From assembly GCA_028023455.1 (NCBI GenBank), contig JAQFVV010000002.1:28086001-28150000 (forward strand): a DNA stretch of 64,000 nt, written 5' to 3'. Source of the stretch: Epiperipatus broadwayi (taxonomy: Eukaryota > Animalia > Onychophora). Of this stretch, positions 4,250 through 62,984 are shown piece by piece. Numbering within the stretch: the stretch's first letter is position 1; each line of letters opens with the position of its first letter. Both the position numbers and the translations under genes were made by a program. The notes below the pieces were generated by a model. That model did not search any database. It was not told the origin of the DNA and worked only from the letters and a program-made list of their open reading frames with translations.

Positions 4250-4384
4250 ATGCTCAAGACTAAATGGACTTAAAAGTAACCATTAGAAACCAATCATCTC
4301 TTATTTATTTCCTTTTTTTTAAAAAAAAATAGCATGAACACATAAGCAATTGAATAGAATAATGTATAATAGCACAGAGTCACA

Positions 4385-4436
<52 letters not shown>

Positions 4437-7957: not shown

Positions 7958-10131
7958 ATGGATTCTGGGGAGAAGCCTCAGTCTAAACAGAGCAGAAAGA
8001 AAATGAGCTGTAACACTCAGAATTCAAACAGTAAAATTAAAGAAAACCTTAAAAAACCTGTCAAAGTAACCCAAAATGGTATCAACAATGATTATATACC
8101 CCAGAAATCTATGCTAAATACAATGACAAAAAATTCTGATAAAAAGAGTAAAATTGAGAATGAAACCAAAAATAATGTTATAACAAAAACACCAGATTCT
8201 TATAAAAATATCACAGAAAAATCAATAGAAACTCAAAACAAAGTTAGGATACCAATTATTGATCAACATTTGCTCAATACTCAAAATTCTCAGAAGTCAA
8301 AAATAAGCCCACAGTAATAAATGCAAAATTGGAACTGGTTGGAACTAAAAATTTCACAAAAATAGACACCACAGATGGTGCTGTACTGGAAGTGTCTGGA
8401 TCTCACAATAAAGAAGGCCAATTTCAGGAGAAAAACACTGAAACCATAATCCCAAGTGCCAAACATGATACAACAGTGGAAAATATTGATCCTCAAGAGG
8501 TTTTGATGCCTAAAAAAATATTACAAAGGGGAAGGAATCTACTTAAAAATAATATGAATGATTGGGAAATTTGGCAGAACTGTAGAAATACTCCACATTC
8601 TCAGTCTTCTACCATACCTCAAAAGCAGGAAATGCAAAAAAGAACACAATTTTCTTGGCTTAATAGTAATGCAAATATTCAAAATATCTATAAATCTAAT
8701 ACTTCTATGACTACTAAAATCATGTCATATGCGGATAAGTTAAAATCTAGTGCAAGTGCTCTCAACTCAAATAATACCATAACCCACGCTATGACAGCTG
8801 GAAAGGGAGAGAGCACTATGAAAAACCAAACTCCAAAAGATCAAAGGTCAGGAAGATTTCTTATTGATTTTGATGAGGAGGAAAATATTATGATGACCAG
8901 TGAGTTCAATGTGCACAACACTGAATTAAAAGATGCCCCAATAGACATTGATAGTTATGAAGCAGTGAGCACTGAATTCAATGACAGGCTGCCTCTGACT
9001 CTGTATAATTCATTTCAAAACTATAATAATGATCATACTCTGATTTTGACTACTACAAATAATAAATGCAATCTCTTCCAATTTCCAAGTGATCAATTAT
9101 TCTCATTAATAAAAGAAAACCAGCTAGCTGATGCAATTAAAAGGGAGTATCACCACCCTAACAGAAGATACTTTGTGGTGGAATTCCAGAATATAATTCA
9201 GAAAGAGATTTTCAAACGAGAGCACAATTTTCTCAATGCAAGGTATCTTGTCAAAATAGATATGGCTAGGCCAAGAGTAGCACATAGGATAGTAAGGAAT
9301 TGTTATATGAACTTCACCAGTGGAAACCTGCAGAAACCCATGGCCAAATTTGGAAACATCACTGCCTTCAAATACTTGGGCGAAAGAAGAGTAGGACTAG
9401 AGCTGCCATCAAACACTGCGGCTTTTACTATCAAACTTGTGAATGGAGTGTCTTTATTTGATTTACCCTCAGTTCTGGAGGAGCCCAACTGCACCTTATA
9501 TCTATCCTTTTGCAGGGTGAAATCACAGTGTTTTATATGTCAGGAGATATCGCATCTAGTAAAAGCCTGCCCAAGAAAATATGTCAAAGGTGTCAGGGCA
9601 GGAGTAGTAGAGCCCACCGGTGTGTGGATTCCTCCTATAGCTTGAAGCACACAGCCTCTTCCTATGGTGATGAAGCTGTGCAGACATTATAATTGGTCTA
9701 ATGATCTAGCTGAAAAACAAAAGCCACAAACAGAACCCAGTGGTACCATAATTGATGCAATTGAAAAGAAGCTGACACCAGAAAATCTCATGTTGGTTGA
9801 TTACAGCCCTAGCAAAACAATGCTCAAGCTAGGGGCAGACACTTTACCCCAAGAGAACAATTGTCTCATAAATGAAATATCAGATATAACCACTGTCAGT
9901 AGTCAAAGTAAAGCTACAGCACCTAGTCCTGTAGACCACCCTATGAATCACACAGGCAAGAGGAAAACACAGGACTCCTCTGGCTCTCAAGGTGAAGAGT
10001 CTGTAAATTTGTGGTCTGATTCTGACATTGAGGAAGCAATAGCTTGGCCAGTGAGTGTTAGATCCAGGAGTCCAATGAAAAAGTATGATAAAAAGAGATC
10101 TAGAATGGCAGACACAGACAAAGAATTATGA
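7958..10131 (+). pseudogene. Tx1/L1 ORF1 (gag-like, CCHC zinc knuckle), frameshifted
   Basis: ORF pieces 7931-8317, 8329-9645 and 9664-10131 join through frameshifts (e.g. ~8300). Knuckle CFICQEISHLVKAC at ~9530-9570. Confidence 0.8.
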
Positions 10132-10350
10132 CAGGAAGAGCTGCAGCAGACACACCCTTGTAATATCCAGATTGGAAGACCAGTCTAGGACCAGCAAAAC
10201 TCACAAGTTACCTCAGAGGACTTGAGACAAGTGATGTCCTGCAATTTGATGGACCCACCTCACTGCAGAAGCTCACTAGAACCTCAGGTACAAATTAAAT
10301 CGCAAAAAGATTGATGCGTGGATTAGGAGACTAGCCAAAACATCATCATC

Positions 10351-13300
10351 ATGCAACTGAACATCGGTGGTGTGAATGTCAGAGGATTAAACTCCTTGGA
10401 TAGAGCATATGCTCTGCAAAGATGGTTCAAGAATAGTCAGATGCATATAGTATGCCTTAGTGAAACAAAGCTTCATTTGAATACCAACAGTAAAATAATA
10501 CAAATCCTCAATCAGTTTGGGGTCTTTCAGTTCTACCAATCAAACACATCCACCTCAGGTGTTGCCATTCTCATTAATAAACAACTGAACATAGAAAGAA
10601 GCAGAACTCTATACCTCAACAATGATTTAATTATAATAGAAATCACAATCTCTGGAATGTCATTAATTCTAATTTATGTCTACATGCAGAAAGACACCAG
10701 GCAGATCGACTTCACAATAGGCAGGATCAACTCTATTCTTGCATCAGCAGTGCCACCTGTCATTTTGTTTGGGGACTTCAACATGGCCTATCAACAGTTT
10801 AATCAAAAATATTTGCATAAACTCAACAGAGTGCTGTTGTGTGGGGAGGGGTGTTTTCCCACCAATGACATGGCAGCACAAAACCCTAATTGATTTACTT
10901 TATTATAGTCCAGAATCTTACCATGAGCTACATGCCTCATTGCAAATTGTTCCATTCTCTGATCATCTGGCCATGTTGATTTCCCTTCAACTGGATCCCA
11001 TATCACTAACCCCCTCATGCCAAATTAATATACTTAACAAGGCCAGCACACCTGAATGGATCTTCTCAGAAGCTTATATCCTCTTCCACAAGATCCAGCT
11101 TCTCTCATTGTCACCTCTAGAGGCTTTTTCAGCCTTTGTAGGGGTACTTGGTTCCCTGATAAACAATTTCACCCGAAAAACCAAAGGTCCAAACAGGCTG
11201 CTTGGGGAGCTGGATTTCATTTGCAAGAGAGTCAGTGAATTATCATCAATTGATGCTGGAATTGGGGAGATCATGTTATTAAAGAAACAGTATAGGTAGA
11301 AACAGAGATTGCTTGCACAATATGTTGCGACAAAAAGGGAAAAGATCTATTTGGCAACACAACAAAATTGGACGCGGAGCTACCTGAGATGGGCCATTGG
11401 TGCTACAAAAAGGCCTACCCCATCATTAATCAACATAGACAACCATAACTACTTTGGGGCTGCAATGCTAGATAAGATCCATGAGCACTTCAAGAGAAAA
11501 CTCCAAAGTCAAAAGTTTGACATCAGTAACATCTGGGATGATAAACAAGAAGTTGGTGAACACAATATAACAGAGGAACAAATAATCCAGAAGCTTCAAT
11601 CCTATCCTGAACATGTCCATCCTGGTTTACATGGCATTCCCCGATTTGTATTGTTGCACCTTAGCCATTTCACAGCTCCGATAGTACAGAGAGTGGTTGA
11701 TATGCTGGCCGGGGACTTTCAAAGTGTTCCTGACCTGTATCCAATTGCTCTTGTACCATACATGAAAAAATTCACCAATCCATCCAGTTTATCTAACATT
11801 AGACCTATCTCAATGTCCCCACTAATCATCAAGTCAATTGAATCATTGGTTAAGGATAGGATCCAGCAGCAATTACTTACCAGGATCTCTGTACACCAGT
11901 TTGCACGCAAAGGCTCATCCACCATTGAGGCGGTGCAGCGCTTTGTGCTGCTGGTGGAGCATGTAAGATCACATCGAAAATCAGGGCCCATTGCTGTTCA
12001 GATAGACTTTGCAGCTGCCTTTGACTCCGTGATGCCAGCAAAACTACTATCCATATTAAGGCACTATGGAGTACCTATTGTCTATGTTAAAATCATTGCT
12101 AACTTGTTGCTAAACAGGTCAATTCACACATCACTTGATGGCTCCCTGGCACCTGGTTTCAGACCACATCTATCAATCCCCCAGGGGTCCCCACTAAGCA
12201 TCCTTTGTTTCATTACCTACCTGAATCCCCTACTAGAAGATGTGGAAAAATAACTACCAGGAGTCTTTGTGCCAGCACTAAAGGAGGAACTCCACCACAT
12301 TTCATATGTGGATGATGTTACCATTTTCCTCCCTTCTGAGAAATACCTGCCAAGTCTATACCAACTGCTGGACAGATTTGGTGACAGATTCAATTTGGCC
12401 ATCAACCCAGACAAATCTGTTGTCTGGAAAATCAGTAGGGGTGTTACAGTACCATCAAGATATACAGGAAATCCACAGAAATTCCTTGGGTTCCCAATTG
12501 CCCTCTCCAAAACAGCGATGAGGAGGGCCATCCAGCAGGATCTTTTGGACAAAACCAAGAAGGTAACAAACTCTCTCTCAATGATCTCCCTCTCACTCCC
12601 AGGCAAGGTGGCATTGTTAAATATGATGGTGTTTCCATGTATAAACTACTACCTGCCCATCTTCAAACCGACCAAGGGTTTTCAGGATGCTATAAATTCA
12701 GCCTGCACCAAGATGATGTGGAAGAGAAAAACTGTATGCATCAGTCTGGCCAAGGTGCAGAGACCACATGACCTGAATGGACTTGGTCTCCATGCTGTCA
12801 AGGTGTTTTTTGTTTAAAGAGCTCTTTCAGTGCTCAGAAAAATCCACAATAAAAAAGAAAAGGATCAGAGTGAAGACACTGTGGAGCCCACAGATACACC
12901 ACCACCCATACACAGTAAATGGGTCAAAGAACTGCAAGAACAACTGGGGACTCTATTTTCAGTTTCCCAGCAATTAGAGAAAGCTAAGCAAACATATTGA
13001 GAAGTATACAAAATCCTTTTCCAAAATCAAAACCCATTATCTACCCGATTAAGACTGTCTGTAAAACAAATGCTCAAGAAGTCAAGATACTGGTGCATAG
13101 GACCAAAGCTGGTCGATTTTATAATCAAGTTTAACTTGTCCTCCTTGCCCACCAGTCACTTTTTGGTGATGCAAAGAGGATTTCGTCAATTAAGCCCCAT
13201 GTGTAAACTCTGTAATATGCATGAAGAAACACTGGAGCACATCTTCTATGTCTGCTCATACCTGAGTTGCACTAGAAATAAAATTATCGCAAATATTTCC

Positions 13301-13618
13301 TCTGGCTGTGGCAATGTTCTGTCAATTGATCGGGCAATTAAAGAAGGAAACTATGCAACTATCAGGCTAGCGGCATGCCTACTACATGCTTTATGGATCA
13401 CCAGGTGCCAGCATATCTTCAGACAAGGACATAGTGATCCTTGGATAACTTTTAAAACAATAATAATAAGCATGAAGAACAGAGATCGACTCCTTGTGCC
13501 AGAGCGTCTCTTTGTAGACACATGGGCACAGATTATCATTTGTGACGATGAGACGACATCTCAGACTACTGCAGTAAATGTTATGACAATACCACACAAA
13601 TTGGTTTCAAAACTTTGA
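10351..13618 (+). pseudogene. Tx1/L1 ORF2 (APE endonuclease, RT, C-terminal zinc-binding domain), broken into ~5 pieces
   Basis: NIGGVNVRGLN, CLSETK, ILFGDFN, SDH (endonuclease); RPIS, IDFAAAFDSV, IPQGSPLS, SYVDDV (RT); CKLCNMHEETLEHIFYVC. Confidence 0.92.
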
Positions 13619-13695
13619 ACTTCTATATGAAACTATTATAATTATCAAATGTAGCTACCTGACACTGTAAATTTTTTCTTAATAAAAAAAAAAAA

Positions 13696-13900
13696 AAGTA
13701 ATATGCAGTTGAAGCATTTATAATTTAGTCAAATATAGAGGTATATTCATACACATAAACTTTATTATATTATCCAGATAGAAGTAATATGCAGTTGAGG
13801 CATTTATAATTTAGTCAAGTATAGAGGTATATTCATACACATAAAGTTTATTATGCAGTTGAAGCATTTATAATTTAGTGAAATATGCACATAAGCATTT
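13696..13900. repeat. ~86-bp tandem repeat (about 2.5 units) that forms the Tx1 target site
   Basis: aagtaatatgcagttga(a/g)gcatttataatttagtcaa starts at 13696 and 13782, with a partial third unit at ~13852. The 25-mer atccagatagaagtaatatgcagtt occurs at both 7711 and 13772. Confidence 0.85.
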
Positions 13901-16900
13901 AGAGTCCATATAGTATTTAATTATTCTAACATAAATATTTACTTGGTCTGCTGCAAACGTATATTTTTATACATAAATTCATTAGCAGTTTTATTTATAT
14001 TTTGAAATATAGAATACAATTAACGTTTTCGTATTTCTCCATTAATTTTTTTCTTTTATTAAAATTTTTATCATAGCATTAATAATTGAATTGCTACTAT
14101 TTTTTAATTCTTACCTTATTACTTGTTGTTCTCTTTCAATACCCATGGGGCTTAATGAATGGCACAGTAGACAGGCTGGAGCTTACTTCAGGATTGTGGA
14201 TGAAGAGAAAAACGCAGGTCAACCGCCCATGTTGTATTGTTTTTTCATGGTTAAGTTTTGATTTTTCTATCTTGCTTTACTTAGTAAAACTGATAAAAAT
14301 AAACACTCTCTGATAATCCGAATTTTCCAAATATTTTGTACTTTCCCTGCTTCTTTTATTCAATATGACTTCTCAAAAGAAAAACTACTTAACCGACGAT
14401 AATAATAAAAATTATTCTCTCTAACTGATAATTCAAATTTTTCAAGCTATTTATACTTTCTGCTTATCAGAATGGATTCTCTTTATATGATGCCTGCCTT
14501 AATTGGTGTTGGTAGTATGTTTTCGTCCACGTTCGTGCCATTTCCTCCAGCTCATTGGCTATTCTTTTTGGCGATAGAAGACCGTTTTTAATTATCTGGC
14601 TATGTGTTTTTGAATTCCAATTAATTTTACATTTCTTTGCCTAAATGCATTGGCTTAACACCTAAGTTATTTTGCCTTACAAATTAATTTTCTGCAATAC
14701 AAAATAAACTTATCTTTTTTTAATGTTTAAATATATTTTTTTCTTTTTTACTTTATTGATTTCCTTTTTTTTGGATTGATGAATTTTAATAAAGAAAGAT
14801 TTACCCTTTCTTTTAATTGCAGATTTAACGTATTTGTTGTCTTTTTTTTATTTTTAATTTGACCAAATTAACTTTCTTTTTTCATTGCTGTCAATTTTCA
14901 TGATTCCTTTGTTTCTTTAAATTTTTAGTTTTCCTCAACCATTATTAAGTCTTTTCTTTTCTAACAACAAATTATGCCAGTATTTTTAAATGAGGGGGGG
15001 GATCTTTTGAATATATATACACGGGGAACAGTATATCTGTTTCAATATATATATATTGTACCAATCGGAATGAAAGTGAAGATCGAATCTAACCGCAAAA
15101 ACAATATCTGCACTACAAGGGCGCCATCTAGGCATTTGAGCCTAGAAAAATTTATAAAGTAGGCAGATACGCGCCGTTAAGATTCCACTTTATTTAAATA
15201 TTCTGATCGTTAGCCCAAGTCACTAGCTCAGTGGAGATGCAGAGATAAAAATCTATATCTTAATTTATATCTTAAATATCAAAGAGTAAAAGCCACTGCC
15301 AGAAATTAACATATAAAAATATTTATTTACACACATATAAAATAATATTTAAATTTTGAGGAATAAGTTTAACATTTTAGATTTTTATATTAACTTTTAA
15401 TTTTACATTTAACTAAGTTTCAATGAGTTTAATTATTATTTAGATAGTCAAGTATGAATAGACTACATAGATCTGCATTTGAAAAGAAAATATTCTTCCC
15501 TGATTTAACCTTAGGCAACAAATTTCGCAATCAAATTGGCGCCAATCCATCTGATACATTCATGTATTCAATGTAGCATGATACGACAACACAAAATACT
15601 ATATTGTCAGGAATGTACATCTGAACAATAAGTAGAAATAGAGAAGACATTGACTCTCCACCAACAGGAATGTGACATCTGTTGGCAAGTAGAACAATAA
15701 ACAAAAAACTCCATAGGAATGGACTGCGGTCTTCTGCCGACTTACAAACCCATCCATAGGCAAACAGAGTGTGTGTGGCGTATATCTATAATCCTGCCCA
15801 TAGCGGACCTCATACTACATCTACTAATTACACAAATATATCCAATCCATTGAACCAATTCAACTACGAAATAAATAATCTAAGATTACCCTCCCTTAAT
15901 ACAACTTTACAAAACTATATAGCCATTCACGCCCGACTTAATTTTAACATTTAAATACGTTCCCACAGATTTGTTTAAAAATGTTGGGTATAGATCGATT
16001 ACATAGATTCCACGGTCAAAAACATTTCAAAATAAACATAAACGATCAAAATACAAAATTATTGATACCGACAATCGCAGAGGGAAACTTATAAGTAACC
16101 CAATAGTATTCACCATAAGATACTTGCGTTGTCACCAATAACTTAAAAGACATCCGAATAAATACATTTTAGATACTCACCGTAAGGTATCATTATTTAT
16201 CGAATGTCTATATATTTTGATCAAATATGAAAACCAAAATATAATTAACCGCAAACGAATCCATGCAAGCGTCTATAAACAACTTAAATTTCATACATTT
16301 AAATAATCTTTACAATAAAAAAAAAAAATGGAAATGATGTTTATCAATCGGAAAACATATAAAATTAAACATTATTAATTTGATTTAAAAACTTACAAAA
16401 GTCAGATAAGAGTCCGTTTTAACATTTCAGTTGGCTTGTTTATCAATTTGTAAAACTTGATGAAAGTTCTTAATTGATTTTAACAATTGTTCATTTCATA
16501 TAGCTTATGGTAGAAGAGTCCAGGCCTCTGCTTTCAATTCCCGTGACGCCTCCGTTGGAAGGTAATGTTCTGGAGATGGCAATAGCTGGTTCAAGGTATC
16601 ACAGTCTTTTCATTTTTTTTTTTTTATAGAGAGTGTGGTATGTGCGTCATACCACATCTCTCAAACACACAACGCTGGAACTGTCCGAAAAACTGTATTT
16701 CCCTTTTTATATTATCCACAAGGATTCACTGAACAAAACGTCACTAATCTATCACTTTCGTTAGGGTCCGAGCCAAGGCTTAGTGCTTCCACTGGTCAAG
16801 CTAAAATCTCTTTCTTCTCTTATCTAACTTTTCATCTGACTTTTTAATTAAACAGCTTTTAGATAATTAATAAACAATCATTTCCATTTACAGATTACAG

Positions 16901-28203: not shown

Positions 28204-28656
28204 TCAGAGGTAAAACTGTCCATGTGCAACCCAGATTAATTACTGGATGCAGGAAGGTTTGGGCATAAAATCCCTATCTAGTGCCTATTCATCCAATATC
28301 TCCAGACTAGTTTCTAGCTTAAGAATTTCATCAGTGAGGAGCCTTGGATCTGAGAGCACTGCATGTAGATCTTAGGATCCTACTCATCCAATATCCCCAG
28401 ACTAATTTCTAGCTTAGGATCCTAAGATCTAGGTACGGTGCTCTCAGATCCAAGGCTTCTCACTGATGAAAACCACAAACTAGAAACTATTCTGGGAATA
28501 TTGGACAAAACTAGGCACTAGATAGGGATTCATTGCACAAACCTCCCTGCATTTAATGATTACTCTGGATTGCACTGAGTGGCACTACTGTATGGAGAAT
28601 TTTGCCTCTGTGAAAAACAGCTTCTGTAAGCATAAAGAATGGTGATCATGTGATGT
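28204..28656. mobile_element. Family A foldback insertion, copy 2 (more diverged)
   Basis: Minus arm then plus arm. 11-bp TSD ttgatattatt (28193-28203 and 28657-28667). Hammerhead remnants at ~28300-28345 (-) and ~28455-28500 (+). Confidence 0.8.
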
Positions 28657-33862: not shown

Positions 33863-34842
33863 AAAAAAAAAAAAGGAATAATTTTGAATGTAATTTTCAA
33901 AAGTAAATTAAAAATGAAACGTATTTAACTTAATAAGAATTTTTATTCGTAAACCAATATCATATAACAAATTAAATAGCTAAGTAAAATTATAAAATAC
34001 ATACTGTTTATGGTGTCAAGCATTGCATTTCATTAACAAAAGATTTAATAAACCTAATATGAATTTTATAAACGCTAACGGTTTCCTAATGATTTTTATA
34101 TATTTTTACAAAGTTTCTTTATGATTATAATACAGTAATTATAATGAAGCAGTAAAACCCTTTTCAAATGATAGCGATTAGAAGAGCACAGTTTCCTTAA
34201 GAATTCGGGCATGTCCAGTAGAAGTCAAGCCTCTGATCTGATTGTGACTTAGAGAAGATGTGTAGTCAAAGTTTCACTGATTGCAATAGCAGGTCTGCAT
34301 ACAGAATTAGATAAATTATGAATTTTTTTTTTTTTTTAAATCTTGTGTCTGTTTATATTATTTGAAATTTTTTTCCAATATTCACTTGGTCTGGATTGGT
34401 ATTCTCACTAATCACTAAACTAATGGTTTTTTAAAATCAAATTATCAAAAAAAATAAAAAAATATTATTTAAACATTTTAATGTAATAATTAAATATAAA
34501 ATAAATCCCAATTATGATTTATAACAATAACCATTACTATGATTAGTTAATGAATAGTTCTCCTTTTTTTACTCTGGCGCCATCTACTATAAGCTTAAGA
34601 AATCAGTGATTAGCAGATGATGGTGCAATTTAATTCTTATCAGCAAACTGGTTTCTGATTTTTACCTTTGTCAGTGAAGATTTGCAATTCAAACCTGAAA
34701 CCAATGCAGTTACACTTTCAATCTCTTATTTTCATATTAAGCTAATAGATTAAAATTTAATATTAAATCAGTAGACAACAATTTAAAAAAAAAAATCTAA
34801 GATTTTTAAACTTAAATTTACATGCTTACTAAATTATAAATT

Positions 34843-36113
34843 GAACCACTAAACATCACATGACCACCATCTCCTATGCTAGCACATAACTGTTATTAAA
34901 CAGGTAAAACTCTCCATATAGTAGTGCTACATTGTGCCAGCCAAAGTAATCAATGGATGCCAGAAGGCTTGTGCATAAAATCCCCATCTAGTGCCTACTC
35001 AGCCAATATCTCCAGACTAGTTTCTGGCTTGTGGCCTTCGTCAGTGAGGAGCCTTGGATCTGAAAGCACTGCACCTAGATCTTAGGATTGCTCCAGCAGC
35101 CATCTTTTATCTCTACTTAACTACAAAACTATGAGAATGAAATTGAAAGCACAATAATATTTTCAAAACTCAATAGCTTATATAGTCATATGGGTCTGAA
35201 TTCAGTTCAGCACCCATGCATTTTGTTGTCTTTGGCTCATTAACAACCATAGCCACCACTATCCTATTAGGCAGGATTGATGTTAAACCACTAAACATCA
35301 CATGATTACCATCTCCTATGCTAGCACATAATTGTTATTAAACAGGCAAAACTCTCCATACAATAATGTGACCCTGTGCCAACCAGAGTAATCAATGGAT
35401 GCCAGAAGGCTTGTGCATAAAATCCCCATGTAGTGCCTACTCATCCTGTGCATAAAATCCCCATTTAGTACCTACTCATCCAATATCTCCAGACTAGTTT
35501 TTGGATTGTGGCCTTCGTCAGTCAGAAGTCTTGAATCTGAGAGGACTGCACCTAGATCTTAGGATCTAATGCAACCTTCCAGCTATCTCTACTAACTATA
35601 AAACTATGAAAATAAAAACACAATATTTTCAATCTAAGCTCAATAGCTTATATAGTCATATGGGTCTGAACTCAGTTCAGCACCATACATTTTGGTTTCT
35701 TTGTCTCATTAACAACCAATCCTGCCTAATAGGATAGTGGTGGCTATGGTTGTTAATGAGCCAAAGACAACAAAATGTATGGATGCCGAACTGAATTCAG
35801 AACCGTATGACTATATAAGCTATTGAGCTTAAATTGAAAATATTATTGGGTTTTCAATTTCATTCTCATAGTTTTGTAGTTAAGTAGAGTTAAAAGGTGG
35901 CTGCTGGAGTGTTGCATTAAATCCTAAGATCTAGGTGCAGTGCTCTCAGATCCAAGGCTCCTCACTGACAAAGGCCACAAGCCAGAAACTAGTCTGGGGA
36001 TATTGGATGAGTAGGCACTAGATGGGGATTTTATGCACAAGCCTTCTGGCATCCATTGATTACTCTGGATGGCACAGGGTAGCACTAATGTATGGAGAGT
36101 TTTGCCTGTTTAA
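34843..36113. mobile_element. Family A foldback insertion, copy 3 (~2 units minus + ~0.9 unit plus)
   Basis: aaccactaaacatcaca at 34844 and 35286 (period 442). Inversion at ~35717. 13-bp TSD taaattataaatt (34830-34842 and 36114-36126). Confidence 0.93.
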
Positions 36114-36767
36114 TAAATTATAAATTATTATCTGATATCCAATCAGTAATTACTTCAGTTCTAGTCCATTTATAAGCTTGATAATATATAAAAAAAAAAG
36201 ATGGTAAAAAATGTTTGCAGGATGCATAACTTGATTCTAGCTTTGAATCCCAAATCTTTATTGATAAAGATAAAAGTCAGAAACTGGTCCGGAGATGAAA
36301 GTTTGCATTACCATTTGTAAACACGTATTAGTACAAAATTACAATAAATTAAAGTGGTGAAGAGAAAAAAGAACAGGTTCATCATAATACTATAGTAAGC
36401 TGAAATGGTATTACTAGGATTATTTTTAATATGAGATTTTATTATATCTGAATCACATCTTTTTTAATCACGGCTAACCTTCATTATATTAAACTTGACT
36501 GCAATTGTGTTCGGATTTATTAGATTTCAAGTTATAAAAATACTGTATTGATAATATCAATATTTATACATGAAATCAGTGAACTATTTATTTTATTTTT
36601 TATAAGTGTATATATATATATATGTAAGAAGCGCAAATGCAATACACGAATACACTAGGTACACAAACAGATTATCAAACACAGATGAATTAACAACAAA
36701 GTAAATAAATAGTTCAATGATAATAGTGACAGCACCATGCTCACTTTATATCAACAATGGAATTTCT

Positions 36768-37075
36768 ATCATCATATGATCACCACTTTTTATGCTTCCA
36801 CAAGTTTTTCAAATAGGCAAAACTCTCCTTACAGTAGTGCCACTCAAATAAAAAAGTAAAAGGTGTTTGCTGAGGGTTACATTAGATCTTAAGATCTCAG
36901 TTCAGTGCTCTCATATCCAAGGCCCCTCAGTGATGAAAGCCACAAGCTAGAAACTAGTCTGGGGATATTGGATGAGTAGGCACTAGATAGGGATTTTATG
37001 CTCAAGCCTTCTGGCATCCACTGATTACTCTGGCTTTCACTGAGTGGTGCTACTGTATGGAGAGTTTTGCCTCTT
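36768..37075. mobile_element. Family A foldback insertion, copy 4
   Basis: Short minus arm ~36768-36848 and a plus arm carrying a hammerhead at ~36925-36965. Helix II reads AGC-cacaa-GCT (covarying with GGC/GCC). No TSD found. Confidence 0.85.
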
Positions 37076-38301
37076 TGTATATATGTAATTGTTGTTCAAA
37101 AAAATGCTCCTTTCTACTAACTTAGTATTATTTTTAAACTAAGAAATATTTACTAAATTCCTTTTAATAAAATTTATATATTTAATAGGTTTTAGATATT
37201 TCTCATATTTCTGCAAGTTTGAAGCTACATTTAGAAAAAAACAGATATTTTTCTACAATACTGAAGAATTATTTATATGACGATTTAAAGATCGATTAGA
37301 AAAATTTGCTTTTGAAATAACTTTTTTATTAACAATAATGAAAATTTTCTATTACTTTTTTTCAAACTGGCAATTCATACAAATTTTAAAGAGTTTACAT
37401 ACAAAAAAAACCCCTCAATGTGAGGTGACATTTGGTTCTTATCTAAATATATCATTTTGTAACAATGTAATAACTATAAAATTTATATCAAAATTTTTAT
37501 TTTTAGTTAAAACTTGATTTTTCATTCTAAGTATATTTAAACTAAATATATTTAAAAAATTTTTACACAATTTTAACGCTCATGAATTTTACAGGCCTTT
37601 TTTTTTTTTGATAATCTTTGACGGTATGACTGATTATGTCATAACAAGAACAATTTCTGCCTCCCTTTTTCCTGGGTTGCTTCTTTTTTTGGTTAGTTCC
37701 TTTTATAGTTTCGCATATTTTAGTCTGACTTTTAACAGCTTTTCCAAATTCAGAAAATTCTTAAATTGTTTTATTACTAATTCATGGAATATTCTCTATT
37801 TAATTGCCAATATTTAGGACAAATCAGTTTTACTGTGTTTATAAAGGTGATTGATATTCATTCCCCATAAAAATTATTCGATTCTCTACATGAGAGCTAA
37901 TACAGATTTTTATAATAATCCTTCATTTTTCCATCATCGCTTTTGATTATTAAGAAAAAATAATCTAGCAATATGTCTAGACTGAAGAACGTTAAAAGGA
38001 TTAGGTAATTTTTTAGGATTACAGAGTTTGTTTGTATTCTCAATGACCTTTCGTCTAGCAAAATATAAAAGTGCAAGTACTTTATTTCAATCATATTGAA
38101 TTCTATAATACAATTCTGGTTCCAAGCATTCATTTTTCTCCTTTGTCTAACAAATTTATGTACACTCATTTATTTTCTGGTATTAGTTATGAATTGAAAG
38201 AAATTGCTAGTAACATTCCTGGATTTGAAAAAAATTCAGAATTTTTACTTAATTATGAAATGTTTCTTATCTGATAAAAAATCACATATAATGTTGTAGC
38301 A

Positions 38302-47333: not shown

Positions 47334-47620
47334 ATGTATGGGAAGCAGAATTATGGGTAATGTTTAGTTTAAATATGTTGTTATTTTATAGTTCTTTACA
47401 CTTAGAGAAGTCTGCTTGCAGCAGTCAAACCATTGGTAGTGTTTCAGAGTCTATTTTCTTGGCCAGTCTGTTTGAGTTGTGAATTTGGGTAATTTTGATT
47501 ATGTATTGACTAGTTTAGCTTTATGTTTTTAATGTTTATATATATAAAGATATAATAAAACTGTAGTCCTGAAATAATATATCCGAAAAACATCATTTTA
47601 GTATGTTCTTTCCTTATACA

Positions 47621-48207
47621 AAGGCAAAACTCTCCACACAGTAGTGCCACCCTGTGCTAACCAGAGTAATCAATGGATGCCAGAAGGCTTGTGCATAAAA
47701 TCCCCATCTAGTGCCTACTCATCCAATATCCCCAGACTAGTTTCTGGCTTGTGGCCATCATCAGTGAGGAGCCTTGGATCTGAGAGCACTGCACCTAGAT
47801 CTTAGGATCTAATGCAACCCTCCAGCAGCCACCTTTTAACTCTACTTTACTACAAAACTATGTGAATGAAATTGGAAAACACAAAAATATTTTCAATCTA
47901 AACTCAATAGCTTATATAGTCATATGGGTCTAAACTCAATTCAGCACCCATACATTTTGGTGTCTTTGGCTCTTAAACAACCATAACCACCACTATCCTA
48001 TTAGGCAGGATTGGTGTTAAACCACTAAACATCACATGATCACATCTCATACTAGCACATAATTGTTGTAAACAAAGGCAAAACTCTCCATACAGTAGTG
48101 CCACCCTGTGTTAACCAGAGTAATTAATGGACTACTGTATGGAGAGTTTTGCCTTTGTTTACAACAATTATGTGCTAGTACAAGATGTGATCATGTGATG
48201 TTTAGTG
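47621..48207. mobile_element. Family A foldback insertion, copy 5 (~510-nt minus arm + ~80-nt plus arm)
   Basis: 16-bp TSD gttctttccttataca (47605-47620 and 48208-48223). Intact minus-strand hammerhead at ~47729-47770. Confidence 0.93.
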
Positions 48208-48975
48208 GTTCTTTCCTTATACAGAAAGAGAGGGGAAAAAAACTAAATAAGGGGTTGCAATGCCTAGTTTTCATTAATTTATTTAACTGCTATATATTGT
48301 TAATACATTAACCTTACTATCATATAACTATGTTTTGCTGCAATTCAAACCAGCCAAACGTTCACACAATAAACCTTCAATGCACGCCATATAGTCTGAA
48401 TCACAATAAGAAATTATAATGTGTATATAAATACAAGTTCCAAAAAATCTATCAGTTAAGATTCAAATAAATAATTAAAAAAAAAATATTTTACAAATAT
48501 AAAAAAAAGTTCAAATTTAAAACCATGGATTTTACACATGGATTTAATAATTAGTAAGCTTACTATCCAGCTACCTTTTTTAAAACTACACCTTTGTCTG
48601 GAACTGTAGTCTTTTACTATTTCTTTATGCCAATCTTAAATTTCTTCATCAGTCATTTTAAGACTAATCTCCAACTTGGGATCTTCAAATGTTTTATGCT
48701 GAATACTATTTTATTTCAGCAAAGTAAAGCAATTTTCAAATAATAGAAACAGATTTCCATCAGGATAGGCAAAATGGCAAGCTTTTTATATCATCATTAC
48801 CATCTTTGGGCTACTAATTATGAGGGATAGCATCTTTTCATTAATGAAGAAATTCATTTTTAAAAATATAGATAGCATACTTCTGCATTCACTCAAACAT
48901 ATTGCTGGAAAACATTTTCATAAAGAAGTTTCCATTATGGTTAAAATAAAATTAGTACTAGAAAGTACTTTCTAG

Positions 48976-49420: not shown

Positions 49421-50497
49421 AATTACTAATACGCTAAAGTTAATTGTGTTACGGTGAAACTTTTAAGTTTATTAATTAGTAGGCTTTTTTTTTTTATCTA
49501 TTCTATCTTTTAGACTTAGCGCTTTCAGAGCCCTTGCAGCTCCATATTCATAGTCCTTTTCATATTGTTAACTATATGCAAATGCATGCAAATTGCTTAT
49601 ATCATCCATTTTTTCAAAATCGCGAAGCACGTGTCCTTTCTGTTTATTGCTCTGGTGATGAAACATGCTTCTTTGACCTTCCTCTTGACATTGTTTCTTT
49701 CTGTGCACATGATGTCAGCTTTAGAGGGCTCAAATTTGTGGTTGCATTCCTGCTGATGGTCAGCAAATACTGAGCTGCCTTCTTTTTTGGTTGTAGCTCT
49801 TGTGTATACATATTTATGCTGGGCCAGTCTATTGCCCACTGTGGCCCGAGTTTCCCCATAATAAACTGAATCACAACCTGTCTGTGAGCAAACAATTCTA
49901 TAAACTACATGGGAGGGTTTCTTCTATGTTTCTTTTGTCTTTAGTATTGTTGATGAGCCTATTGGTGTTTGGAGGGATTCTGAATCAGAGTTTGAATTCC
50001 TTCTGTAATATTTTACTGAAGTTTTTTGCCACTGCAGATATGTAGGGTATAGTCAGATGTTGTTTGTCTTCTTTTGTGTTCTGTTGCAGTCTTTTATAAA
50101 AGTTTTCAATCCTGTTGGTTATTGTTCTATGATCAAAACCCAAGCTTATTAAGTCCCTGATGTAGATGGTGATGTTGTTTTTCTTGTCTGACTCTAAATT
50201 ACACAGGTGGTTATTGTGAAATAAGAAGGCAGACAGCCCTGTGAGTTTGTGTGATTTAGGGGATTTTGAGAGTGGATGGAGACAACCTCTAACTTCGCGA
50301 TTTCGAAAAAAATGGATGATATAAGCAATTTGCATGCATTTGCATATAGTTAACAATATGAAAAAGGACTATGAATATGGAGCTGCAAGGGCTCTGAAAG
50401 TGCTAAGTCTAAAAGATAGAATAGATAAAAAAAGCCTACTAATTAATAAACTTAAAAGTTTCACCGTAACACAATTAATTTTAGCGTATTAGTAATT
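49421..50497 (-). mobile_element. 5'-truncated Penelope-like element (lineage 2) with an inverted pLTR copy
   Basis: LTIPYIS, VYYGETRATVGNRLAQHK and HKFEPSKADIMCTERNNVKRKVKEACFI (GIY-YIG). Inverted arms at 49421-49627 and 50293-50497. Confidence 0.92.
49512..49556 (-). ncRNA. Variant minimal hammerhead with an A3-U8 core (second copy 50366-50410, +)
   Basis: GGACT-ATGAATA-t-GGAGC-tgcaagg-GCTCT-GAA-AGCGCT-A-AGTCT. Confidence 0.65.
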
Positions 50498-50582: not shown

Positions 50583-50770
50583 TAACATCACAAGCCACCA
50601 TTTCCTATGCTTACACAAGCTGTTAAAACAATAGCAAACTCTAAAATTGATTACTACGGCTTGCACTGGGTGGGACTACTGCATAGTGAGTTTGCTAACA
50701 AGTTTTTCTTGGTATAATTGCTGAGAGATTCTTGGTTTCATTTAAGAAGAAGCTACAGTACATCACATGA
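50583..50770. repeat. Degenerate family A-like foldback fused to a LINE 3' end (50694-50769)
   Basis: agcaaactc...gagtttgct arms, then gctaacaag...gaagaag...acatcacatg matching 3825-3888. Confidence 0.55.
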
Positions 50771-51843: not shown

Positions 51844-53770
51844 CACCTGGGTCTCGTTTTATGCGGATTATTTTAATGCGATTTTGAAGTTATGCGATTC
51901 ATGTTTCTTCTTAATATCTTTCATATTTCACTATATTTATTAGATATCAAGAAATTTAAATTATTAATAACTTATTTTCACTTGAAATACTTTTTTTTTT
52001 TAAAAATATAACGTTATATTAGCAGCTAACGTGAATATGGCCAGAAGCTTCTATGTAAATAACTTATTTATACTAATGAGTAAATAATAATACAGTAATA
52101 ATAGATTTATACTTACATATAAAAATATCGCAATAAATATTCAAAAAAATTAAACTTTTAAAACGTAGTTTGTTATATATAACAGAAATAAATAATCTTT
52201 TAGATTTTTAAAATAAAAAACGAAGATTTTATAAACTGAAAATAATCTTTCTAATGATAATGTATAATCTTTTTGTTTTGATTGTGATTTCATTTTTTTA
52301 ATATAGAAACAGAAAACCATTAACACAGCATAATACTGGAAGTGGCACTAGTTGTATATCACATCACAAATAAAAATAAAGTGGCTAACAAGTTTCTCTG
52401 GGCATAATTGCTAAGAAATTCTTGATTTCATTTAAGGAGAAGCCACAATACATTACATCACATCACATCGAATCTGATTTCTTACCAGTTTACAAACGAA
52501 CGCTAGCGGTAATGATTAAAATATGTATGAAAAATGTAAAAATTAAATACACCTGGGTCTCTTTTTACGAGGACTTATTTAACACGATTTTGAAGTTACA
52601 CGATCATGTTTCACCGGAAGTCGACCTCCGAAAATGTGCTATTACTTTAAATAATAAATTTTGCGCACTTTCGTTATATTGAAAGTAATAGCACTTTATT
52701 GGAATTCGACTTTCATCTTAGTAATTTCAATATTTTCAGTGCTTTATAATAGTAAGATTTTATGCAATAATGAAATTAAAACCATGATTTCCACATTTTA
52801 TGTATACACAGATTAAATTTTACAAGATTATAATGTAAATTTGTTCAAACATTGTGCGTGTTAATTTTGCATTTTAAATCACATTCTATTTTTGCTTTTT
52901 AAAAAAGAATGTAATCAATTATTATTTTCTTATTAATGACACTAATCATTAATGTGCTCTTAAATTCCAACAAGAGCTAAATGGTTGTATGTCTGGATAT
53001 CGCGAGCTTCATAAACAATTAATAAAATCATCATCTCAAAGATTAATTACGTTGTCACCAGAAAATCATTAACACAACATGAGAGTGAAGTTGGTGCTAG
53101 TTGTATTTCCTCTTGAGAAGAATCTGATTTTTTTACCAGTTTGCAAACGAACCTGTTTATCAATAATAATTAAAACGTGTATAAAAAAATGTAAATTACT
53201 GTACTGTAAATTATACATAAAAATATATTATTTTGAATAAAATTAAATATTATAGTTAAAAAAAGTTTGTCTTGTATCAATTTTTTTCAAATTTGAAATT
53301 TTTTATTAGTCATATTTTATTTCCTTATTTTTTTTTTGCGCGAATTTTAAAGTAATTTTACGTTGGTGCTTTGCTTTTACGCGAATTTTGAAAAATCACA
53401 GACCGCATCCCCCCTTTTTCAATGTAAGTTACGTCTACTTTTGCGCGATTTCATTTGCGCATGTTTTCTGAGGAACCTATCTATCACATAAAACGAGACC
53501 CAGGTGTACTGTAGTTAATAAAAAAGTAAAAAAAGTTTGTCTTGTATTAATTTTTTCCAAATATTTGAAATTTTTTATTAGTCATATTTTATTTGCTTAT
53601 TTTTTTAATGCAAACTTTAAAGTAATTTTTCTTTGTTGCTTTGCTTTTATGCGAATTCCGAAAATTATAGCACATATCCCCCATTTTTCAAAGTAAATTA
53701 AGTCTATTTTTGTGCGATTTTTTTTAATGCGGGTTTTCTGTGGAACCTATCTACTATGTAAAACGAGACA
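51844..53770. mobile_element. pogo/Tigger-like non-autonomous complex with duplicated ends and a transposase C-terminal remnant
   Basis: TA-flanked TIRs cacctgggtctcgttttatg (51844) / cataaaacgagacccaggtg (to 53506). Extra termini at ~52551 and ~53770. ALKFQQELNGCMSGYRELHKQL at ~52960-53025. Confidence 0.75.
52378..52477 (+). mobile_element. Isolated LINE 3' end with (CATCA)n tail
   Basis: gtggctaacaagtttctctgggcataattgct...acatcacatcacatc matches 3825-3888. Confidence 0.75.
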
Positions 53771-54109: not shown

Positions 54110-54290
54110 TATAGCATATATGTGTAGAGATGGTAATCTGGTCCAACTGATGATTGCTGGTTTAGCATGAAATACGTATATTGGTGATTATTTATCTTTT
54201 CAACATATGTGTTCAAGTGTATCAGTGTTTAGTGTGGAGTGTGGTGGGTTGTGTGAAAGTCTGGGCTCATATACCATATATATTACATAT
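54110..54290 (+). mobile_element. Family D copy with an intact-core hammerhead at 54143-54184
   Basis: CCAA-CTGATGA-tTGCTG-gtt-TAGCAt-GAA-ATACGTAT-A-TTGG. Predicted cleavage after 54180. Confidence 0.75.
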
Positions 54291-54650
54291 ATAGATCCAG
54301 GTATATAATAAGCCTGTGTGTTTCAGTTATAACTAATTAATGAGTTATATTTAGCTTACAGTTTATTACCACGAATTGTCAAATTCCTTTGATTGTTCAA
54401 TATATCATTATCATACTGCATTTTTGATGATTTAATTGCTTTTATTTTTCTTGAAATTAATCTTTTTTCTAATCTTACAAAATTATAATTAAATTCTATT
54501 TCACTATTTTAAAAGAATATCTTTTAAAATTTCTATGATTCTTTTATAACTTAATATTTATTTCCATTTGAAATTTATACCTTTATATGTATGTGTATTT
54601 AAACGTATACATAAATATCAATTACACTTACATAAAAAAATTTTTTCATA

Positions 54651-55580
54651 CCACTAAACATCACATGATCACCATTTCTTATACTAGCACATAATTGTTG
54701 TAAACAAAGGCAAAACTCTTCATACAGTAAAGCCACCCTGTGCCAACCAGAGTAATCAATGGATGCCAGAAGTCTTGTGCATAAAATCCCTATCTAGTGC
54801 CTACTCATCCAATATCCCCAGACTAGTTTCTGGCTTGTGGCTATCATCAGTGAGGAGCCTTTGATCTGAGAGCACTGCACCTAGATCTTAAAATCTAATG
54901 CAACTCTCCAGCAGCCACCTTTTAACTCTACTAAGGTGGCTGCTGGAGGGTTGCATTAGATCCTAAGATCTAGGTGCAGTGCTCTCAGATCCAAGGCTTC
55001 TCACTGATGATGGCCACAAGCCAGAAACTAGTCTTGGGATACTTGGATGAGTAGGCACTAGATAGGGGTTTTATGCACAAGCCTTCTGGCATCCATTGAT
55101 TACTCTGGTTGGCACAGGGTGGCACTACTGAATGGAGAGTTTTGCCTTTGTTTACAACAATTATGTGCTAGTATAAGAGATGGTGATTGATGTTTAGTGG
55201 TATAACACCAATCCTGCCTAATAGGATAGTGGTGGCTATGGTTGTTTAAGAGCCAAAGATCCCAAAATGTATGGGTACTGAATTGAGTTCAGACCCATAT
55301 GACTATATAAGCTATTGAACTTAGATTGAAAATATTATTGTTTTCAATTTCATTCTCATAGTTTTGTAGTAGAGTTAAAAGGTGGCTGCTGGAGGGTTGC
55401 ATTAGATCCTAAGATCTAGGTGCAGTTCTCTCAGATCCAAGGCTCCTCACTGATGATGGCCACAAGCCAGAAACTAGTCTGGGGATATTGGATGAGTAGG
55501 CACTAGATAGGGATTTTATGCACAGGCCTTCTGGCATCCATTGATTACTCTCGTTGGCACAGGGTGGCACTACTGTATGA
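54651..55580. mobile_element. Family A foldback insertion, copy 6 (~285-nt minus + ~645-nt plus)
   Basis: ggtggctgctggagggttgcattagatcc at 54935 and 55381 (period 446). Imperfect aattttttcat TSD-like flanks. Confidence 0.93.
55444..55485 (+). ncRNA. Intact minimal type I hammerhead ribozyme of family A
   Basis: TCCTCA-CTGATGA-TGGC-cacaa-GCCA-GAA-ACTAGT-C-TGGGGA. Palindromic helix III. Predicted GUC cleavage after 55479. Confidence 0.85.
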
Positions 55581-56706
55581 GAATTTTTTTTTTCATCCAA
55601 TCTCACTACGTTTATGCCATCTAGTATAATGCTAGTTGTGATTAATAAATTCTTATTCAGCGCTAACTGGCATCTACTGATTACTAAAGCTTATACGAGA
55701 TCGCATGAGCGTAGTGAAATCCCGGGTTTTAGATTGCTAATAGATAGAAAATGCGAAAGTAAAGATCATGTGATGTCTAGTTCATCATGGGATAAAAACA
55801 AGTTATAAATCTGTTAGCAAAGCAAGAAGAGTACAACGGATAATGAATCATAAAAAAAAACACTCCAGTAAAAACATGACATTATGCACTCTCCCAGGAA
55901 TAAATAACAGGACTTGATATAATATTACATTTTTATAATTTTTTGTAATTTTCAATATACATATGTGAGTCATATTGTATAACTAAGATACCACTAACTC
56001 ATTTCATCCAGTATTAGTAATGACAAACCATTATACTTTTGCGTAAACTGTTTTAGAAATCTACCACTATAGAGATAAACATTTTTATTTATTCCGAATC
56101 TGTTCTATTTTCTTTCGTTATATTAAACACCGTACAACTGTTATAACTATATAATTATAAGAATAGAATAATTGGAATATATGATTTTAAAAAATGTAAA
56201 TACATAAGAAATAATATACATAATTACATTTTTAAAAACATAATGCAGTTCATAAATAAAGTGAATTCTAATTATAAACTACGTTATATGACTTTTATAA
56301 AAGCTTATTTCAAAAATAGGTAAAAAACTAATTGTTTTTGATATTAATTATAAAAAATCCGGAATTAAAATATTATTAAAATATATATATATTTTCTATT
56401 TTCAAAAAATAATATGTTTTAGAAACAAAATAAGTATACAAACCTTGAGCTCAAGGTATTTTTTTCATTTTATAATTCAGTCGCAAGAGGTCGGTCAAAT
56501 ACAAAACAAAAAAATAAAATTGAAAGTGTTCGTTTTTTCATAATTTTTGTTCACAACATTGCAAATTTTTCCCCCAGTAAATAAACTTGTATTATTCCAA
56601 AATATAAACGAAAACGTTTTTAATTATACAGCAAATATAAATATTTTTCCTATTTAATGTAAAATTTTAATTAAACTTTTATACTTTTAGTGTTTCAAAA
56701 TCAAGA

Positions 56707-61524: not shown

Positions 61525-61617
61525 TTTATTAAAACAGGCAAAACTCTCCATACAGTAATGCCACTCAGGGCAAGTCAGAGTAATCAATGGACGATCATGT
61601 GATGTTTGGTGGTTTAA
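61525..61617. mobile_element. Family A foldback insertion, copy 7 (minimal: ~65-nt minus + ~27-nt plus)
   Basis: 9-bp TSD gtcagcata (61516-61524 and 61618-61626). Confidence 0.8.
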
Positions 61618-62745
61618 GTCAGCATAGTCTAAAACATAAAATCCCAAAGTAAGTAAACTATACTCATGCAAGCTATGAATAAATAGTTTCTTTACATTAG
61701 GTGATAAAAACTGTAATGGAACCCATCTATTCTTTCAACTTATGATAATAGTCTTGTTTTGTTAACACTATTGAAAATTCAGAATGAAAATACTATTTAG
61801 CCAAATGTAAATATGGTGTTAGTAATTTTGAACTTATAATCAATTGAACAGAGAGCAAACTGAATTTCACTTGCAGTATCATTTGTGGTAATAATTAAAT
61901 AAAAGTTAATAATTATATTTCTATTCTCAATTTCTGGCAGGGTTGCTAAAATCAGAACTTATGTTGTGAACTCATCCTAAGCCTACTATCAAATAATGGA
62001 CTTGTCCAGATTACAATGTTATCAACATTGGTTTGAATATATAATACAATTGACCAATGAAATGACAGTGAAGAAAAATAAATTAGTTAATGGCATAAAT
62101 AGGCCAATTTGAGGAGCTAGGTTAGTGAATCTGATTGTTTTTAGTAGTTAAAGGACTCTCATTATATATTGAAAGTCTATTTGAGAAAATACTCAGATAA
62201 CTGTCAGATATCAGATGATAGTAAACTAGTTGTGCATTATTTGATAGAATATAGCAAAGAATGTGCAAGCCTGAAGTAGAAAGTTCCAGATACTGACATC
62301 ATTGTACCCATATCTGAGACAAGGCACTAATGGTCTGCAAAAAAATCAGATTCAATGGAAGAGTTAATTGTTTAAGATTTACTATTACAGTATTTGATTA
62401 TCACTACATATATAAATTAGCATTTTTGGTTTATCTTAAAGGATTTTTTAATTTTCAATGTTTACTTTTTTTGTTCCCGCACTTTTTTTTGATAGTAGCA
62501 CCTTAGGCTATTTAATGTGATGTTTTCCCACACTTTTTTTTAAGTGTAGTGCCTTAGGTGATTTATTTTTTTGAAAACTAAATGTTTCTAGTTGATGTCA
62601 TTTATCGCTTGCATGTGCCATCAGTGTTTTTGTGTGTTTTCAAATTCAAAATGGCCGTCGAGCACTACTATATCAGCACCAACTTTTCTTAGAGGCTTTT
62701 CTATATGTAATGATAGAAATAGTAGACTTTTCTCCAAAAAATGTT

Positions 62746-62984
62746 GGAAATAGGGATATTGAAATTAATATTTACTAAGGCAATAAACCTCAAGAATGTG
62801 CGCTTAAAAATGTGAAGGTAGGGACCTCTACAGGTCTTAACCACAAGCTTACGCTATGGAAGAATGGAAATAGTGTTATTGAAATTAATATTTACTAAGG
62901 CAATAAACCTCAAGAATGTGCGCTTGAAAATGTGAAGGTGGGGGCCTCTACAGGTCTTAACCACAAGCTTACACTATGGAAGAA
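62746..62984 (+). repeat. 120-bp direct tandem duplication
   Basis: tggaaatag...ctatggaagaa at 62746 and 62866, nearly identical. Confidence 0.9.

Follow-up and report, generated by a model that had tools for sequence, protein, structure and literature searches.

The window analysed here, a 64,000-nt stretch of contig JAQFVV010000002.1 from Epiperipatus broadwayi (positions 28,086,001 to 28,150,000; 30% GC), harbours dispersed copies of a non-coding element that we call family A, with one putative hammerhead ribozyme in each unit. A sequence-only reading of the window had drawn attention to positions 34843-36113. In this study we found that these positions hold exactly one family A insertion, flanked at 34830-34842 and 36114-36126 by the two copies of a 13-bp direct repeat, TAAATTATAAATT, its target-site duplication (TSD). 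As the repeat is exact on both sides, the coordinates mark out a single insertion event.

When the first unit and the family consensus were compared with the locus by BLAST, two head-to-tail units antisense to the hammerhead were found, followed by one inverted sense arm. Unit 1 (34843-35290, minus strand) aligned with consensus positions 1-460 at 92% identity, and its outer end is of the 'long' 3' type, lying at consensus ~460 and including a tail of ~50 nt. Unit 2 (35286-35718, minus strand; BLAST) stands in tandem with unit 1, is 5'-truncated at consensus ~42 and contains a 35-bp internal duplication (35412-35481). The sense arm (35709-36113, plus strand; the BLAST match runs to 36116) covers consensus ~5-411 at 95% identity and terminates in the 'short' 3' end. 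The sequence-only reading had described a seamless tandem of a ~442-446-nt unit. The head-to-tail repetition was borne out, with a unit of 446-460 nt, but an antisense arm is joined head to head with a sense arm and the arrangement is no simple tandem. Tandem Repeats Finder (TRF) gave no period of ~450 nt at the locus, the 35-bp duplication being its sole report there. The best Rfam match in the region, to the plant microRNA precursor MIR7533 (35671-35795), reached 43.8 bits against a gathering score of 230 and was rejected; it arises because the inversion junction at these positions forms a long, near-perfect hairpin (palindrome).

Each of the three units at the locus carries a hammerhead, and an intact core was found in just one of them. 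This is the hammerhead of unit 1 (35009-35050, minus strand), which reads UCCUCA CUGACGA A GGC CACAA GCC A GAA ACUAGU C UGGAGA and has one mismatch in helix I. The hammerhead of unit 2 (35486-35527, minus strand) is dead, with G12 changed to A and further changes in helices I and II. That of the sense arm (35959-36000, plus strand) reads CUGACAA and is dead as well through a G8 to A change, a product of CpG decay. The copy at 34843-36113 is therefore an old, largely inactivated insertion.

The family A consensus is 460 nt long with 41% GC. That the unit lacks an apparent open reading frame (ORF) was confirmed, as the longest ATG-initiated ORF in a consensus dimer comprises 42 aa, and no coding remnant was detected when 62 ORF pieces of Penelope-like elements (PLEs) were compared with the consensus by tblastn. 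The several local hairpins noted earlier in the unit are present and were also seen in the predicted fold. The sense 446-nt monomer at 55034-55479 had a predicted folding energy of -151.4 kcal/mol (z -5.5; 0 of 100 shuffles were as stable), compared with z -2.2 for the antisense strand. The predicted monomer fold is branched and long-range paired, and such strong self-pairing fits the 'highly self-paired' RNAs described for retrozymes (PMC7229834).

Eight family A insertions were identified in the window with nhmmer and BLAST, together 4,183 bp or 6.5% of its length. The dispersed copies listed in the sequence-only reading, including a degenerate one, were all recovered, and six of them are bounded by exact TSDs. 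The insertion at 2548-2968 consists of an antisense and a sense arm between 8-bp TSD copies at 2540-2547 and 2969-2976, and the two-armed one at 28204-28656 has the 11-bp TSD TTGATATTATT. For the two-armed insertion at 36769-37078 no TSD of at least 8 bp was found; its hammerhead (36924-36965) has C3 changed to G and the helix II variant AGC/GCT. Two insertions belong to a T subfamily characterized below. One of them, at 47621-48207, lies between copies of the 16-bp TSD GTTCTTTCCTTATACA (47605-47620 and 48208-48223) and contains an intact hammerhead with a U10.1-A11.1 pair on the minus strand (47729-47770). The other, at 54650-55587, has a 9-bp TSD and is the best preserved. Its sense arm (54933-55587, plus strand) holds two hammerheads with intact cores, at 54998-55039 and 55444-55485, with predicted cut sites after 55033 and after 55479, 446 nt apart. 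Two further insertions are small: a short, degenerate two-armed one at 50584-50693 (nhmmer and BLAST), and one of 93 nt at 61525-61617 that still has two arms and the 9-bp TSD GTCAGCATA.

A search of the whole assembly (5.6 Gb, 18,588 contigs) returned 5,773 first-look candidates for family A, of which 40 were scored. Five further insertions were met in 170 kb of loci that had been picked for PLE genes. By rough extrapolation from these densities the genome would hold on the order of 10^5 insertions. In the window and 30 genomic loci, copies were 82-97% identical to the consensus by BLAST, mostly 93-95%.

The consensus hammerhead reads UCCUCA-CUGA(U/C)GA-A-GGC-CACAA-GCC-A-GAA-ACUAGU-C-UGGGGA, with one motif per unit and the cut predicted between C and UGGGGA. 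The string quoted in the sequence-only reading was present, and the cut position it predicted, after C55479, was correct. The catalytic core CUGANGA...GAAA with the cleavage triplet GUC (NUH) was found in the consensus and is intact in 48 of 75 ungapped copies. Helix I, UCCUCA/UGGGGA, is open and comprises 6 bp including one G.U pair (45/75 copies). The palindromic helix III, ACUAGU, was retained in 59 of the 75; it cannot form a stable hairpin but can form 6 bp between two copies, which is the double-hammerhead logic of the newt and PLE motifs (PMC4209133). A complete descriptor, which required the core, H17, a palindromic helix III, 5 or more of the 6 bp of helix I and 3 bp or more in helix II, matched at four places in the window, all of them in family A, compared with none in 100 dinucleotide shuffles. 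The loop 1-loop 2 tertiary contacts of a canonical type I hammerhead were not found: helix I is open, and its flanks pair elsewhere in the predicted fold. We concluded from the core, the descriptor and the ACUAGU counts that the motif is, as had been proposed, a genuine minimal type I hammerhead of the dimer type with a palindromic helix III, its catalysis being putative. A literature search with the hammerhead string retrieved no relevant paper.

Palindromic helices III of differing sequence occur in three unrelated hammerhead families of the window, namely ACUAGU in family A, AUACGUAU and AGCGCU, and ACGU is a further such palindrome in hammerheads of PLE loci. This recurrence is between-family support for the predicted architecture. 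Support from within the family, which the sequence-only reading had seen in a covarying helix II (AGC/GCT), did not survive: the variant is confined to the single copy at 36924-36965, whose core is dead, and the other helix II variants are single-sided decay. Covariation of helix II within the family was thus rejected, its variation being neutral decay. A T subfamily with U-A at 10.1/11.1, and therefore a helix II of 4 bp, accounts for 9 of the 75 ungapped motifs; it comprises five insertions and is distinguished by at least 10 other diagnostic sites.

Among the 75 copies the core reads CUGAUGA in 37, CUGACGA in 14 and CUGACAA in 11. The N7-G8 dinucleotide, scored in 88 family A copies, was TG in 47, CG in 25 and CA in 14, and the consensus is without any CpG. 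The core variants look like the products of CpG decay of an ancestral N7-G8 'CG', the CA product of which kills G8. If CpG deamination is indeed the cause, DNA methylation would be the main killer of the ribozyme core (G8 to A), and the host genome would methylate its CpGs.

To describe the anatomy of the insertions we used 41 insertion clusters. In all 29 simple two-arm insertions the antisense arm precedes the sense arm, so that the arms adjoin at the centre with their 5' ends and have their 3' ends on the outside. Exact TSDs of 8-16 bp (median 13) surround 27 of the 33 insertions that have two recognisable outer ends. The two outer ends of an insertion were of different kinds in 26 of 28 cases, one falling at consensus ~398-419 (...GAGAGUUUUGCCUGUUUAAU) and one at ~448-460; the second end thus lies ~50 nt further along the unit and forms a 'tail' on one side only. 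No poly(A) was found at the ends of family A insertions. The arms span up to 4.6 units, and since they run through more than one unit the template must have exceeded a single unit, being multimeric or circular. The two arms of an insertion agree in the bases diagnostic of a subfamily, which is consistent with one template for both.

The position of the inner junction differs among insertions. The inner ends of the two arms nevertheless lie close to each other in unit coordinates, at a median of 46 nt and within 60 nt in 19 of 29 cases (circular distance; permutation p ~1e-4), and the junction overlaps in the 29 two-arm insertions (window and loci L002-L064) were 0-10 nt. This proximity might be explained by run-off at an RNA 5' end common to both arms, or else by turn-back synthesis. 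Twin priming of the classical L1 type on a single RNA was rejected as the sole model; it predicts that the inner start of one arm coincides with the outer end of the other, and this was not seen. One locus departs from the pattern: at L017 1045-1985 both outer ends are of the 'long' type and the flanks are inverted, not direct, repeats. A larger palindromic rearrangement is one possible cause, an artefact of assembly another.

PLEs of the same genome provided the comparison. More than 10,000 GIY-YIG candidates were found in the assembly, with open frames of up to 901 aa, and we concluded that PLEs are abundant and that some look intact. We sampled 40 PLE-centred loci, from several families. 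Neighbouring PLE copies formed (- then +) pairs 20 times and (+ then -) pairs 0 times, and tandem copies were spaced ~3.1 kb apart. Three insertions were dissected and showed TSDs of 9-13 bp and a tail of 49-54 nt on one side only: L067 (13-bp TSD, 54-nt tail, right only), L064 (12-bp TSD, 49-nt tail, right only) and L068 (9-bp exact repeat, 54-nt tail, left only). In the dissected pairs the mutually aligning parts of the arms are separated by a central spacer of ~190-280 nt. Some 100-130 nt separate the hammerhead-like motifs of these PLEs from the short 3' end downstream, and in family A the spacing is alike, with the cut site at consensus 288 and the short end at ~408. The 900-aa ORF of the PLE at L065 contains a YVDD motif; a GIY-YIG domain was recovered in the genome search, and Atlas clusters of RVT_1, HTH_animal and GIY-YIG animal proteins were matched. 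Pfam gave no match for this ORF, probably owing to its extreme K/N/I composition.

Behind the GIY-YIG gene of autonomous PLE copies we also observed a conserved motif, UUGAAAA-A-GACUAU...AUAGUC-GAA-ACGU-U, at L044, L050, L055, L056, L060, L063-L065 and L067-L069 (for example L067 5144, plus strand). Two hammerhead readings are possible, one with a U3-A8 core and the other, displaced by 6 nt, with the A3-U8 core AUGACUA; helix III is a 4-nt palindrome. A related motif with a different helix II (UGACUAUAGAGUAAAGAUAGUC) was present at L051, L057, L062, L066 and L070.

In the published description (PMC8557442), PLE insertions are marked by partial tandems, by a neighbouring copy that is inverted and 5'-truncated, and by a single-ended tail. 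Head-to-head arms, a one-sided tail of ~50 nt and a TSD of ~13 bp are common to family A and to the PLEs of this genome. This shared anatomy is strong evidence, drawn from comparison of insertions, that a PLE reverse transcriptase and endonuclease would mobilise family A in trans, and a Penelope-like RT/GIY-YIG protein, which the sequence-only reading had suggested as the mobiliser, is the best-supported candidate. Our favoured explanation, to which we give a probability of about 0.82, is that family A is a high-copy, non-coding and non-autonomous retroelement with a putative minimal hammerhead in each unit, copied in trans by PLE RT/GIY-YIG machinery. Classified by its sequence features, family A is an animal non-LTR retrozyme (LTR, long terminal repeat) of a minimal-hammerhead, PLE-like sort, in agreement with the retrozyme-like, ORF-less and hammerhead-bearing element that had been described.

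Several observations weigh against this explanation. Family A showed no sequence similarity to the 40 PLE loci apart from nearby insertions (BLAST, and tblastn with the 62 PLE ORF pieces), and these loci were drawn from the more than 10,000 candidates. The sampled PLE hammerheads have U3-A8 or A3-U8 cores, in contrast to the canonical C3-G8 of family A. In 62 of 75 copies positions 10.1/11.1 are occupied by an A.A mismatch, which reduces helix II to the 3 bp of GGC/GCC, and PLE-type minimal hammerheads cleave poorly in vitro (PMC4209133). No Rfam hammerhead match was obtained at the gathering score, nor at E<=10 on 2.5 kb or on 91 nt; motifs that lack both loop 1 and a hairpin at helix III are not expected to match. 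Of 58 arm ends, just 1 lay within 5 nt of the predicted cut site. The inner junctions are thus not piled up at the cut site, and the insertions give no positive trace of cleavage.

The age of the family counts against it as well. Mean identity was 0.909 between units of one insertion and 0.886 between units of different insertions, with units ~6% from the consensus; most of the divergence is therefore post-insertional and the family is old. Family A may no longer be active. Near-identical neighbouring units (0.99) were found in a few arrays (L003, L024). Between one fifth and one quarter of the sampled 31-mers were held by 14 public runs (11 organism labels, 5 studies), none of which is recorded as RNA and all of which consist of contigs. 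In four runs 2,919-14,941 contigs per run matched; contigs show neither ends, strand nor level. Summed contig depth was higher over the hammerhead-containing third of the unit in 4/4 runs, a weak lead as depth is one figure per contig. The data suggest that family A or close kin is abundant in several related samples.

One alternative is that the unit is only the pseudo-LTR (pLTR) or 3' end of an autonomous PLE, the loci being extremely 5'-truncated PLE insertions. The architecture is indeed that of PLE 3' ends, in which the arms are inverted, a tail is present and the hammerhead precedes the 3' end by ~120 nt, and the Xenopus retrozymes resemble pLTRs (10.64898/2026.07.22.740005). But single TSD-bounded insertions repeat every 446-460 nt, for up to 4.6 units and with no ORF, when a truncated PLE would give a multi-kb period (~3.1 kb), and no similarity to the 40 PLE loci or their proteins was found. 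As the TSD-bounded insertions hold only 446-460-nt units, the unit is not merely a pLTR; the sequence-only reading had named this outcome as one that would overturn its proposal, and structurally it was not what we found. We regard the pLTR explanation as very improbable and largely refuted. A short interspersed element (SINE)-like sequence moved by a long interspersed element (LINE) of the APE type is very unlikely. A broken LINE with Exo_endo_phos and RVT_1 domains is present in the window at 8329-13618, LINEs do mobilise short non-coding RNAs, and twin priming can yield inversions. Yet family A ends in neither poly(A) nor a simple repeat, and a head of tRNA, 7SL or 5S type is missing: ARAGORN found no tRNA in the window, and an Rfam search on 2.5 kb gave no tRNA, 5S or 7SL match. 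The outer ends at two fixed template positions ~50 nt apart are not given by L1-type twin priming either, and the anatomy is identical to that of the PLE copies in this genome.

Inverted arms of tandem units with a TSD on both sides would also be produced by a foldback DNA transposon, similar to a miniature inverted-repeat transposable element (MITE), with long inverted arms built of subrepeats. The termini of family A are however asymmetric (consensus ~408 versus ~460), its arms differ in length by whole units, and very short second arms and single-arm copies exist; PLEs that encode a reverse transcriptase have the same structure. This origin appears extremely unlikely. We give equally little credence to an ordinary satellite that unequal crossing-over or segmental duplication has spread, with the hammerhead string a chance occurrence or a fossil. 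The tandem layout and the near-identical neighbours in L003 and L024 would suit a satellite, but not thousands of dispersed short insertions that each have their own TSD and fixed 3' ends; moreover, the motif is absent from shuffles and the same architecture recurs in unrelated families.

Under the favoured explanation, in which family A is copied by PLE machinery, a possible course of events can be outlined. Genomic arrays would be transcribed into multimers. In these, the palindromic ACUAGU of helix III would join two adjacent hammerheads, which would then cut after GUC. The resulting self-paired RNA of ~446-460 nt might be ligated into a circle. A PLE endonuclease would nick an AT-rich target with a stagger of ~13 bp, and the PLE reverse transcriptase would begin internally, ~120 or ~170 nt downstream of the cut, and from there copy its way around the template. 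In its complete form, with family A RNAs cut by double hammerheads and circularised, and with scars that record the PLE reverse transcriptase making two fixed starts ~50 nt apart on a circular or multimeric template and then turning back near its stop, this scheme is speculative and we hold it to be rather doubtful. If true, family A would offer a natural record, in very high copy number, from which the PLE integration mechanism and the function of the minimal hammerhead could be read, and ~10^5 TSD-bounded events would be a large natural data set for PLE integration.

The canonical type I hammerhead belongs to the original definition of animal non-LTR retrozymes (Cervera & de la Pena 2020, PMC7229834), whose units measure ~150-450 nt (PMC7229834) and up to 972 nt in a 2026 preprint (Li, Clavereau & Pollet; 10.64898/2026.07.22.740005). 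Their dependence on PLEs has been proposed (PMC7229834; 10.64898/2026.07.22.740005), and the preprint argues that retrozymes are non-autonomous PLE derivatives. Family A resembles metazoan non-LTR retrozymes in its ORF-less, low-GC unit (41% here) of a few hundred nt, arranged head to tail with one type I hammerhead each, in TSDs of more than 4 bp, in a strongly self-paired predicted RNA and in co-occurrence with PLEs. It differs from them in a hammerhead of the minimal PLE type, without loop 1/loop 2 contacts or a helix III hairpin, and in insertions that are head-to-head inverted multimers with a one-sided tail. Such insertions are described in the main text of neither paper: the word 'inverted' does not occur in the main text of PMC7229834, and occurs once in 10.64898/2026.07.22.740005, in the reference list only.

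Minimal hammerheads have been described in the pLTRs of PLEs and as thousands of dispersed motifs in non-coding DNA (PMC4209133, PMC7761336). With the pLTR motifs (Cervera & de la Pena 2014, PMC4209133) family A shares the conserved core, a helix I that is open and ~6 bp long, a helix III whose short palindrome implies action as a dimer, an irregular base at the bottom of helix II and a massive dispersed copy number. Unlike them, the family A motif stands in a 460-nt non-coding unit that transposes separately and not in the flank of a reverse transcriptase gene, and its helix II has 3-4 bp compared with 6-8 bp in the PLE motifs of Schistosoma and Drosophila (PMC4209133). Family A thereby accounts for some of the minimal hammerheads that have been reported since 2014 as scattered through non-coding DNA.

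In Chlamydomonas, non-autonomous PLEs with multicopy head-to-tail insertions are known (PMC8557442). These elements (Chlamys derivatives and MRC1; Craig et al. 2021, PMC8557442) have 5' truncation, partial tandems and multicopy head-to-tail insertions in common with family A, and the PLE insertions of that study also have an adjacent inverted 5'-truncated copy and a short tail at one end, the non-autonomous ones being without an ORF. The Chlamys and Naiad elements differ in having no canonical hammerheads. The tail is ~50 nt in family A and 30-40 nt in the PLEs of PMC8557442. The Chlamys derivatives are similar at their 3' end to an autonomous partner, whereas for family A none was found among the 40 PLE loci.

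Newt satellite 2 and the amphibian retrozymes (HHR_Amex1/2) likewise have a dimer-dependent type I hammerhead with a palindromic helix III, theirs very weak and located in a tandem unit of ~330-350 nt. The U.U mismatch at the base of helix II in HHR_Amex2 (PMC7229834) is comparable to the A.A of family A. The amphibian motifs, however, keep loops 1 and 2 with their tertiary contacts and have no sequence similarity to family A, and the host genome here has an AT-rich invertebrate look.

The sequence-only reading had called family A a possibly undescribed retrozyme family. It is new at the level of the family, but elements of its kind have already been published (PMC7229834, PMC4209133, bioRxiv 10.64898/2026.07.22.740005, PMC8557442). 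What is new here is the insertion-scar evidence for PLE mobilisation together with the near-symmetric inversion junction, neither of which we found described for retrozymes in the literature examined. The scars add to a link between retrozymes and PLEs that has so far been argued from co-occurrence, a shared hammerhead and, in Xenopus, pLTR similarity.

Other elements were also observed in the window. The broken non-LTR retrotransposon at 8329-13618 (plus strand) encodes a zinc knuckle, Exo_endo_phos, RVT_1 and zf-RVT in successive ORF pieces and is unrelated to family A. A second minimal hammerhead family is represented at 54141-54190 (plus strand, core from 54147) by a motif that reads CCAA CUGAUGA U UGCU GGUUU AGCA U GAA AUACGUAU A UUGG. 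Its helix III is an 8-nt palindrome and a U.U stands at 10.1/11.1; the copy shortly precedes the family A insertion at 54650, and the family was also seen in L062 from 5024 (plus strand). A hammerhead of the PLE type at ~49512-49556 (minus strand, core from 49551) has an A3-U8 core (AUGAAUA) and the helix III palindrome AGCGCU. Tandem repeats unrelated to family A were found at 53257-53769 (270 bp, 1.9 copies) and 1208-1387 (37/74 bp).

An inverted pair at 63129-63199 (minus strand) and 63686-63756 (plus strand) carries a hammerhead-like CCUCA CUGAUGA UGCUAGAUGCA ... with decayed GAAA and helix III. The pair showed weak nhmmer similarity to the family A consensus at positions 81-296 (E 2e-5) and may represent a sister family of family A. 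Beside it, TRF detected a 120-bp tandem repeat at 62745-62984.

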